Part shown: positions 22,401-25,400 of the stretch, in pieces
Layout: every line of letters begins with the position of its first letter
Numbering within the stretch: the first letter of the stretch is position 1
Assembly (NCBI RefSeq): GCF_001194135.2
Contig: NC_068983.1
Location: forward strand, 167,844,568-167,908,567
Length of the DNA stretch: 64,000 nt
Source: Octopus bimaculoides
Taxonomy: Eukaryota
Reading direction: 5' to 3'
The notes under the pieces: model-generated
The model's database searches: none
Told to the model about the DNA's origin: nothing
The model's input: only the letters and a program-made list of their open reading frames with translations
Made by a program: the position numbers and the translations under genes

Positions 22401-25400
22401 GAAGCAGTAGCTATATACATACATTATATATATATATATATATATATATATATATATATATAATGTATGTAAAGAAATTACTACAAAAATATAGATATCA
22501 AAAATCATTGCAAAAGCAGAAAACATGGAGTAATAAATTGGTTGGAAGAAAAAGGCCAAATAAAGAATCCTTAAGGGAGATGAGGGAGAAAAGGACAAGA
22601 TATATAAAAAAAAAAAAAAAACTTTAAAATACTACACACAGTAGTAGAAAAAAATTACCAAAGGTAACTTTATATATAACTACAGGTATTTTACTTGATT
22701 CTAAATAATTAAGTTGGTGAAAGCATTTTCAATGCTTCAAAGATTAAAAACATAAGATGAGATATGAAGTGAAAGGAAAATGCTATTAACATTATTGTGA
22801 TCTCTCCAAGTAACAGCTAGAGGTGCATTTTACGAGTAACTTGCCAAAGGCTTTGGCAATCAAATCATGAAACAGACATACAAAAGTTCGTTTGTTGAAA
22901 CATAATAATTATCTTATTTTTGCTTCTATTTTAAGAAAAATAAGGGGCACAGGGCACCTTCTAGGCTAACATCAATGAACTCCCTTCATCAGCTCTTTCA
23001 CAACAAAATAATAAAACCCTTAAACTACAACAACAAAATGTTTACGTTATTAACCCCTTTCATTTCCATATTTCTGCCTTTGTTTTAATTAATTTTGAAA
23101 ATAATGAAGAATTTAGCAATATATTCTTCTTGTTTTGTCAGTCCTTGGAACATGAATTAAGAAATTTTCAAAGGTTTTAATCTAGATAATTTAAAACAGG
23201 AAGTATATATCCTAGAGCCAGAGGTGATCCGAGATGGATTGGCATCTCAGCTAATATTGCTTATAGTCCAGATTGATTTGAGAGAAAAACTCAGAGGAAA
23301 TAATCAGATGTTATAGCCAAGAATATGACAAGGGAATCCAAAGACCTAACCTTCAAAGTGGCAACACTTTCATTAAATGGATACTTTATTCTTTTTCTGT
23401 AGACATATGGATTAATTTTTAATACAATCAATGCTATGATAAATTATCATGAGTATATAAAACAGTGAAAATTAAAACAATGATTTACATATTCATTGAT
23501 AACATATTTTGGTAGATTTTAACATATGTTAGTGATTCTTGTATCTCAGTTCTGGAGAACAACTCTTTTCAAAGGAGGTGTTGACAATATACTTGATTCA
23601 GTAATATAAAGACAGGTGTTCTTGGCATTATTGCTTTAGTATCAATTTATTATAATTATTAATTTATGTATTTTTTTAAGTATATGGATGAAAAACCATA
23701 TTTAATTTTCATCAAATTTGAACTCAGAAGTGAAAAAAGCTAAATTCTTCAAAAGTCTTTTGGGTTTGGTTCCTTACGACCTCAGCTAATTCACTTCTAA
23801 GATGATGTGACTCACAATCCGTGTGCATGCATCTAAACCAACGTTATAACAAAGATGATTACATTAGATGACAATATTTTTCTCTTATAAAAATTAAAGA
23901 ATTTATAAATGAAGAGAATAATTGTAGAACCCTTACAGAAACTGGGAAACCCCTCCAACTAAAACACAACAACAACAAAAAAAGAGCTAAAATATTCATT
24001 GTTAACAAGCAATGAACAATGATTCCAGATATCTCTACAATGTGAAGAGGTTTACTAAGATGCTATAGTAGAATTGGTGGAGAATTAAGATGTACATACA
24101 TTGCAGAGAGAAAGAAACATTTGCAGTTTGTCCATGAAGAGTCTTGACATTCTCATATCTATATCAGTTTGTGAAGAGAGAGAGGAGTTTGTGTTTATTC
24201 ATCTACAGAAATGGACTTTGACAGAAAAGTCCTTGTCATTCTAAACAAAGTGAATTACACACATACATGACTAGTCCCATACCATCTTCAAACTAGATAC
24301 TGTGCTCAACAACAGGCAAGGCTGCTCGCAATATATGGTGCAAGGAGCTACTTCAGAAAAGAAGAGGACAAATAAGAATGCAACAGCTAAGATTTAAAAA
24401 CATTTTCACGTACTAACAATACGTTTTCGCAGGATGAACCAGATCATTGCTGAAAATAAAAGTTGAAAGTGGGTTCTTATCAGTGTTTCATTATTGAAAT
24501 TAGTAAACAAATTTAGAATTTAAAAATAAGAAGCTGTTCACAGCTTATTAGGTTCTTAATACTCCAACATTTGATCAATCACAAGTTACAGCTTTATTTC
24601 ACTAAAAGTCACTAAAATATATGTAATCCCTCTTGTGATCCCTCAAAAGGTTACGACTATTACAAGGGAGATCATTTCGTTATAATCTGAAGTAAGATTA
24701 GAAACTGAAATTAAAGAAAGTTACAGAAAACAATGCATAGAATTCACTTATTCAATATTTTGGGTTTATTTGATATGAAGTTCTTAAAATTCCTTGGCAT
24801 TCCATGTATAGCATTATTTTTAGAAATCAGTCTGACATAACCTAGCACAGGCATGGCCTAGACCACTTCTGTCTGAAACTTATCTACGTATTATCGATAA
24901 GATGTTTATATTTATCAATAACAATATTTTTTCACTTATTTAAAATTGCTGACCACTTTGAATCAACTTAGCTTAAAATATTTAAAATCATACAAAGAGG
25001 AAAACTGGAAAAAAAAAAAATAATAAATTTATATTAGAAATATTAAACAGGTCTTTTAGGAGGCAAGGTAGGAGAAGCTGTTTGCATAAGCAACTAAATA
25101 ACTGCATATCTAGTGATCCAAACTACAGTCATGTGAAAGGTAACTATTATAAAAGAGGGAAACCATGATGGGATAAGAACTACTTGTTGGTAGACAACAG
25201 AAGATGCAATCAAATTTTAGTTAGATTTTCTGTTTTTTTTTATCATTGTCCTTATTTCAACATCTGTTTTTCCGTGCTTGCATAGGTCGAGCAGAATTTG
25301 TTGAGGCAGATTTTCTACATCTGGATGCCTTTCTTGACACCAACCCACACACGTTTCTAAGCTCCTTGGCCAAGAAATGTTTTGCATAGGAAACTTGTAA

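Follow-up and report, generated by a model that had tools for sequence, protein, structure and literature searches.

The element described here is a 36-nucleotide (nt) cassette microexon in the DENND5 gene of Octopus bimaculoides, carried on the minus strand of a 64,000-nt stretch of contig NC_068983.1 (hereafter the window) and inserted into the coding sequence of the first RUN domain, RUN1. Its closest described counterparts are database isoforms of a spider and a nematode. The DENND5A-like gene of the spider Argiope bruennichi is represented by four RefSeq isoforms that together comprise all combinations of two cassettes: X5 (XP_055949488.1) reads ..LTP-D-ISNL, X4 (XP_055949487.1) reads ..LTP-ALAWCVLRKRID-Y-ISNL, X3 (XP_055949486.1, P0323) carries only a different cassette of 29 residues, and X1 (XP_055949484.1, P0327) carries both. 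These proteins resemble the octopus gene in the junction that follows ..DPNFLTP, in the 12-residue insert with its W..LRKR core, in the Asp restored on skipping, and in the presence of a second cassette nearby. They differ from it in that Tyr rather than Asn follows the insert, and in that the second spider cassette (29 residues) lies after the microexon, whereas that of the octopus (exon X, 42 residues) lies before it; the two are not detectably homologous. In Strongyloides stercoralis, two entries of 1854 and 1842 amino acids (A0A913IAG1, with ALMWVIFRRQFE, and A0AAF5I4L1, without it) differ by 12 residues at the same junction, after ..NALSP, and S. ratti XP_024498694.1 is an insert form (AFMWVIFRRQFE). 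The nematode insert, as read from the protein entries, shares a W-x-x-x-R-R-Q core with that of the octopus, but its peptide is more divergent.

Other systems provide comparisons for the protein and for the splicing event. In mouse and human DENND5A, the loop formed by residues 813–835 (PDB 3CWZ; PMC3338420) occupies the same position, is likewise flexible and basic/Ser-rich, and is also split by a phase-1 intron; unlike the octopus protein, the vertebrate one has no insert, and its loop is dispensable for Rab6/Golgi recruitment. The fly ortholog of DENND5 is pinstripe (PMC7503973). The neuronal microexons of SRRM3/4 (eMIC domain) are, like the octopus exon, very short, frame-preserving and deeply conserved, and they lengthen the surface loops of proteins involved in trafficking or signalling by a few residues; the octopus exon departs from them in its length of 36 nt, its weak donor, the occurrence of UGC in three of seven loci, and its lack of conservation in vertebrates. 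With respect to the peptide itself, unstructured basic-hydrophobic membrane-binding motifs and the [WFY]xx[LIV] LC3-interacting region (LIR) motifs of the RUN-domain proteins FYCO1 and PLEKHM1 are relevant. The insert resembles these in that a flexible loop holds a Trp-bearing hydrophobic run and, after it, a basic cluster, and the window peptide contains W-F-I-L. It differs from an LIR in that many orthologs have Met or Phe at Trp+3 and in that its flanks are basic rather than acidic.

The identity of the octopus gene was established from its neighboring exons, which assemble into a 221-residue RUN1 region. This region matched PDB 3CWZ chain B (Rab6-interacting protein 1) in a phmmer search (E = 1.4e-68) and Pfam RUN (E = 5e-15). 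The full RUN1 query was required, as a short query of 87 residues gave no PDB match and recovered a single genomic open reading frame (ORF) fragment from the protein database. RUN1 exon A (52183..52335, minus strand) is near-identical to 3CWZ_B residues 56–120, and exon D (19781..20031, minus strand) was placed with the assembled region and by tblastn with a protein of another cephalopod, GAB1599712.1 ('DENN domain-containing 5B isoform X4 [Argonauta hians]'; P0192). Residues 705–1339 of this ortholog are collinear with window 54684..1245 on the minus strand, with 72–97% identity over constitutive exons, and beyond RUN1 the gene continues with exons for PLAT and RUN2, as indicated by the same search and visible in the window. 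The window therefore contains the 3' half of DENND5; it begins at approximately residue 705 of the Argonauta ortholog, and the N-terminal uDENN-DENN-dDENN exons lie outside it. These matches support the original prediction, made from the DNA letters alone, that the block is a coding exon inside DENND5 RUN1.

The microexon is flanked by two RUN1 exons. Upstream, the constitutive exon B (48302–48206, minus strand) encodes 32 residues plus a single G and ends in phase 1 (...ACT CCA G, followed by gttggt); a phase-1 end of this exon, in which ..L[ST]P precedes G(t), is conserved across many invertebrate genomic ORFs. Downstream, exon C (21215–21089, minus strand) begins with AT GCA after cccttag and holds a basic/Ser-rich stretch. 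The intervening 26,990 nt (21216–48205) begin with GT and end with AG. Within this interval, the minus strand reads ...ttttattttcag, then 36 nt at window 24449–24414 (CAATGATCTGGTTCATCCTGCGAAAACGTATTGTTA), then gtacgt. The 3' splice site with its polypyrimidine tract (ctttcaacttttattttcag; 24450..24469, minus strand) ends at 24450, and the non-consensus 5' splice site GTACGT, with C at +4, occupies 24408..24413 (minus strand; next bases gtacgtg). As expected of a cassette exon, the block is bordered by an AG acceptor and a GT donor, consists of whole triplets and is open in the phase of the gene. Of the remaining two frames, one contains a stop and the other is open but is not that of the gene. 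Translation gives eleven residues between an Ala and an Asn at the split codons (phase 1-1): skipping yields ..DPKLLTP-D-AVSAE, while inclusion adds 12 residues. The initial AT of exon C completes Asp when the microexon is skipped and Asn after either cassette. The 36-nt block, strong acceptor, GTACGT donor, phase and both junction peptides had all been read correctly in the original prediction. At 36 nt the exon falls within the broad definition of a microexon (up to 51 nt) and exceeds the strict limit of 27 nt, which is said to come from Irimia and colleagues in 2014. No ORF of 60 or more amino acids covers the block, and it is missing from the Idotea model P0100 and from Argonauta isoform X4, in agreement with the earlier expectation that ORF tracks and gene predictors would miss it.

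Support for a coding role comes principally from orthologous introns. Genomic contigs encoding the upstream exon were taken from public assemblies, and those spanning the intron were inspected. Every one of them contained a 36-nt AG/GT block in phase 1-1, giving six further loci: the arthropod-like L001 (A-LAWSVMRKRMD), L002 (A-LAWCVLRKRLD), L003 (A-LAWSVLRKRLD), L004 (A-VAWSVMRKRMD) and L005/L006 (A-LAWVILRRRLD), and the isopod Idotea baltica (A-MAWGVLRKRID). The donor is gtgggt in L005/L006 and gtacgt in the others. The peptides of the six loci conform to A-[LMV]-x-W-x-[VI]-[LM]-R-[KR]-R-[LMI]-[DV], and a broader consensus is A-[LMV]-x-W-x-[VIL]-[LM]-R-[KR]-[RQ]-[LMI]-[DV]. The Idotea model P0100 corresponds to the skip form, and the microexon is therefore unannotated there. 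The downstream exon starts with AT after ag in the window, L002, L003, L004 and L012, and with AC in Idotea, such that skipping always rebuilds Asp and inclusion gives Tyr, His or Asn. Skip junctions of the form LTP/LSP-D-LS are encoded in L002–L004 and Idotea and are present in spider isoform X5. The arthropod peptides given in the prediction proved exact, in that L002 encodes ALAWCVLRKRLD-Y and the predicted skip junction is found in these same sequences; the conserved block that it had proposed to look for in arthropods is present at the same phase-1 intron position. Pairwise identity among the microexon orthologs was 0.60, 0.85 and 0.45 at the first, second and third codon positions, and 84 of 170 differing codon pairs were synonymous (86 non-synonymous). 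This wobble-type pattern indicates that selection acts on the protein.

An exhaustive profile search with an alignment of insert-bearing proteins, together with cluster look-ups, extended the distribution to further named proteins. The peptide occurs in the rotifers Rotaria (AVVWCLMRKQLV; L007 510–548, fused to the downstream exon) and Didymodactylos, in the acanthocephalan Neoechinorhynchus (ALTWCIMRKKLN) and in the mite Dermatophagoides (LVGWISIKKRID). In L012 (2617–2653) it forms part of the upstream exon, which makes it constitutive, and in L011 (P0004) the intron has been lost and the skip form is fixed without the peptide. Different lineages have lost different introns here: the one downstream of the insert in Rotaria, the one upstream of it in L012, and the intron as a whole in P0004. 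The peptide was absent from all sea-urchin and crinoid isoforms seen, from a coral locus, and from vertebrate sequences, among which two fish genomic ORFs read through an intron of ~90 nt at this site without it. Locus L013 (P0110) was left out because its sequence stops short of the microexon site. A Sigmodon hispidus locus considered as vertebrate intron evidence (L010; GCA_041721565.1, 10001–12301) was rejected as an uninformative, intron-less retrocopy; annotated as 'DENND5A isoform X2', it has dDENN, RUN and PLAT pieces within 2.3 kb, is almost intron-less, and is most likely a processed retrocopy. Judged from the available sequences, the distribution is protostome-wide, covering Spiralia (cephalopod, rotifers, acanthocephalan) and Ecdysozoa (arthropods, nematode), a pattern that fits the proposed 'ancient protostome splice switch'. 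Overall, the 36-nt block is very probably an authentic coding microexon of DENND5, ancient and of the cassette type, whose length, phase, peptide and, for the most part, GTACGT donor have been retained from the protostome ancestor or an earlier one.

The donor of the microexon is itself conserved. GTACGT directly 3' of the exon is common to six of the seven cassette lineages (the cephalopod, Idotea and L001–L004), while the other intron sequence cannot be aligned. Copies are located at window 24408–24413, L001 603–608, L002 9629–9634, L003 2648–2653, L004 1837–1842 and L008 10926–10931. It is the sole GTACGT among the 14 donors of the gene in the window, and the exonic positions of this splice site are poor as well. 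A hairpin hiding the donor was considered and rejected as a general explanation: ACGUA..UACGU can be formed in the window and partially in L002 and L003, but it is inconsistent across loci. Around the microexon, no consistent signal across loci was seen for motifs of Rbfox (GCAUG) or of Nova (YCAY).

The original prediction suggested that the microexon may be neuronal. Membership of the neuron-specific SRRM/eMIC programme is possible but doubtful. The exon is short, frame-preserving and deeply conserved, the loop that it enters is at the surface of a trafficking protein, and UGC occurs close to the 3' splice site in three of the seven loci (L002, L003 and L005), all of which would suit an eMIC target. 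In contrast, the last 40 nt before the 3' splice site contain no UGC in the window, L001, L004 and Idotea, the exon has a weak donor and not a strong one, and 36 nt exceeds the strict 3–27-nt class. In addition, the fly ortholog (pns/CG7852/FBgn0035229) was not found in the supplement text, the part consulted, of a fly eMIC study (PMC8797185).

A second cassette, absent from the prediction, lies in the same interval. Exon X (35935–35810, minus strand) is 126 nt long, in phase 1-1, and is bounded by the acceptor ggacattag and the strong donor gtaagt. It encodes 41 residues between an Ala and an Asn or Thr at the split codons and corresponds to a 43-residue insertion of Argonauta hians isoform X4 at the same junction (79% identity, E = 4e-16; tblastn with P0192). 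The order in the gene is exon B, exon X, microexon, exon C. The length and GT..AG ends of the 26,990-nt intron originally described are correct, but because exon X lies inside it, the interval is a single intron solely in the isoform that skips everything. Two independent cassettes would allow as many as four isoforms. Outside cephalopods, no homolog of exon X was found, and from this distribution the exon looks cephalopod-specific. Homology between exon X and the spider 29-residue cassette, or copies of either in other loci, was tested and rejected (best match E = 0.64, in L005). The spider cassette (RSEPFWNIGLLLVKTGALSTLVSQLTNI) sits after the microexon in Argiope X1 and X3, and L005 1896–1952 is a weak possible counterpart of it (E = 0.64). 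Cassette exons appear to be concentrated at the exon B/C junction.

From its orthologs, we infer that the microexon is alternatively spliced in this cephalopod too, possibly in combination with exon X. The competing view, in which the microexon is real but constitutive here and acts as a switch only in other lineages, appears quite unlikely. It draws on the fact that the peptide is fixed in rotifers, the L012 lineage, mites and acanthocephalans. However, Argonauta isoform X4 contains exon X without the microexon, and pairs of skip and inclusion forms are annotated in the spider and the nematode. The microexon also has its own introns, symmetric phase and a weak conserved donor, a combination typical of regulated cassettes.

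Within RUN1, the insert falls in a stretch that cannot be aligned to the mouse protein and corresponds to the loop between helices alpha3 and alpha4. The original prediction had placed it in the Rab6-binding region and proposed that it could change Rab6 or membrane binding. Although the insert does lie within RUN1, the Rab6-binding domain, Rab6 touches RUN1 through helices alpha1 and alpha8 (PMC3676764), and removal of mouse DENND5A residues 813–835, the alpha3-alpha4 loop, for solubility left Golgi recruitment and Rab6 co-localisation intact (PMC3338420). The claimed location at the Rab6-binding region is thus not upheld, and a direct effect of the insert on the Rab6 interface is very unlikely. 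A basic/Ser-rich stretch shortly 3' of the cassette junction is retained in all lineages (10 residues in exon C of the window, RGRSKSRDRKS in arthropod-like sequences, ERRKSD in vertebrates). Part of the same loop, it resembles an RRxS-type phosphorylation site.

In the insert peptide, an invariant Trp stands within a hydrophobic run, after which basic residues cluster. Residues 1–7 have a favourable interfacial free energy of −2.1 to −4.4 kcal/mol, and the net charge of the insert is +1 to +3, a composition compatible with a basic-hydrophobic membrane-binding motif. AlphaFold models placed the motif differently: in the acanthocephalan protein P0303, which has a short loop, it forms a confident helix (419–430; means of 81 and 92 over 10-residue blocks on the predicted local distance difference test, pLDDT), and in the mite protein P0284 it lies in a loop with pLDDT <50. 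Regulated inclusion would place a short linear motif, prone to form a helix and running from hydrophobic to basic, in a flexible regulatory loop of RUN1 that is rich in Ser and Arg, and could thereby make or remove a docking element, leaving the Rab6 interface (alpha1, alpha8) untouched. In this reading, splicing would control a docking motif that folds conditionally. Human DENND5A adopts a closed form through a charged DENN-RUN1/PLAT interface, the opening trigger of which is not known (PMC11341845). The motif may dock to a protein surface, either intramolecularly, shifting the closed/open equilibrium between DENN and RUN1/PLAT as in human DENND5A, or on a partner; we hold this tentatively, at a little short of an even chance. 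Less probably, it may act as a basic-hydrophobic motif that docks to acidic membranes of the Golgi or of endosomes, and an indirect tuning of Rab6 affinity is improbable.

Several observations weigh against an ancient, regulated cassette that adds a docking motif. Isoform X4 of the close ortholog in Argonauta lacks the microexon, which fits alternative use, yet an exon can also be missed. The Argiope and Strongyloides isoforms are automated database models. The helical hydrophobic moment of the insert is low (0.16–0.24), and we rejected an amphipathic-helix reading because this value is not that of a classical amphipathic membrane helix. Finally, the AlphaFold pictures, ordered helix in one case and disordered loop in the other, conflict and derive from shallow alignments.

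Splice signals alone do not set the microexon apart, and it is homology that decides. The interval 21216–48205 contains 859 open, phase 1-1 AG..GT candidates of 9–60 nt, 46 of which are 36 nt long, and by a crude splice score the microexon ranks 11th among the 859, owing to a good acceptor and a weak donor. When scored against the orthologous microexons (those outside the window), the peptide reached a BLOSUM62 score of 39, whereas the runner-up among the 12-mers of the interval scored 25. Only 1 of 200 shuffled introns attained 39 in any frame, before AG/GT edges, phase, length and the shared GTACGT were demanded. A loose regular expression for the peptide was not specific, with 5 matches in the six frames of the window against ~1 in shuffles, so that position, phase, length and a scored alignment have to carry the argument. 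A repeat or transposon origin of the block was also rejected, as no repeat family covers 24414–24449. The idea of a chance pseudo-exon or a conserved non-coding element (a splicing regulator or repeat), which the many comparable candidates would favour, is effectively refuted by the recurrence of length, phase, position and peptide in no fewer than seven other lineages, by the wobble-type codons, by a peptide score far above the interval background, by the presence of the peptide in annotated proteins, and by the lack of a repeat family over the block.

Other features of the window lie apart from the microexon. An ORF with two C2H2 zinc fingers (63650–63859, minus strand; Pfam zf-C2H2, E = 9e-11) is located upstream of the first mapped DENND5 exon and, judged by its sequence, may be a transposon remnant or a fragment of a nested or neighboring gene. 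An intronic ORF on the plus strand (12466–12924) showed a weak similarity to a PHD finger that, at 21.8 bits, stayed below the cut-off of 24 and probably reflects chance or a decayed insertion. The introns contain SINE-like (short interspersed nuclear element-like) interspersed repeats of several families, 80–240 nt in length (e.g. 10302–10464, 13643–13805 and 50965–51127), further copies at 12956–13192, 39602–39838 and 50528–50764 plus related ones, and long GA/CA microsatellites. Five assembly gaps (N runs) are present at 33218–33565, 45221–45269, 45693–45713, 58060–58477 and 62660–62761.

We found no paper combining DENND5 with a microexon, and literature searches on cephalopod or protostome microexons turned up no mention of this exon; it is already contained in automated isoform models of other species, with no describing paper found. 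A 2026 comparison of 20 bilaterians reported 'at least two' ancestral microexons older than 700 million years (bioRxiv 10.64898/2026.09.05.749416). Cassette microexons shared across phyla are rare, and the one described here is common to Spiralia and Ecdysozoa in length, phase, peptide and, mostly, donor hexamer. Cephalopod and crustacean gene models miss it (Argonauta isoform X4 and Idotea), and the up to four isoforms of the octopus gene deserve annotation. DENND5 is a Rab6 effector and a guanine nucleotide exchange factor for Rab39, and human DENND5A causes developmental and epileptic encephalopathy; a natural 12-residue splice insert in the RUN1 loop provides a ready isoform pair for probing RUN1 regulation. 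As a speculation that we consider unlikely in its entirety, the microexon could be a protostome-specific switch more than 500 million years old, in which the GTACGT donor serves as the regulatory handle, a helix-forming W-x-x-hydrophobic-RKR motif in the RUN1 regulatory loop sets the closed/open (autoinhibited/active) state of DENND5 or its engagement with membranes or partners, and the whole was lost in deuterostomes. If this were true, deuterostomes would have lost one layer of control over the Rab6/Rab39 pathway.

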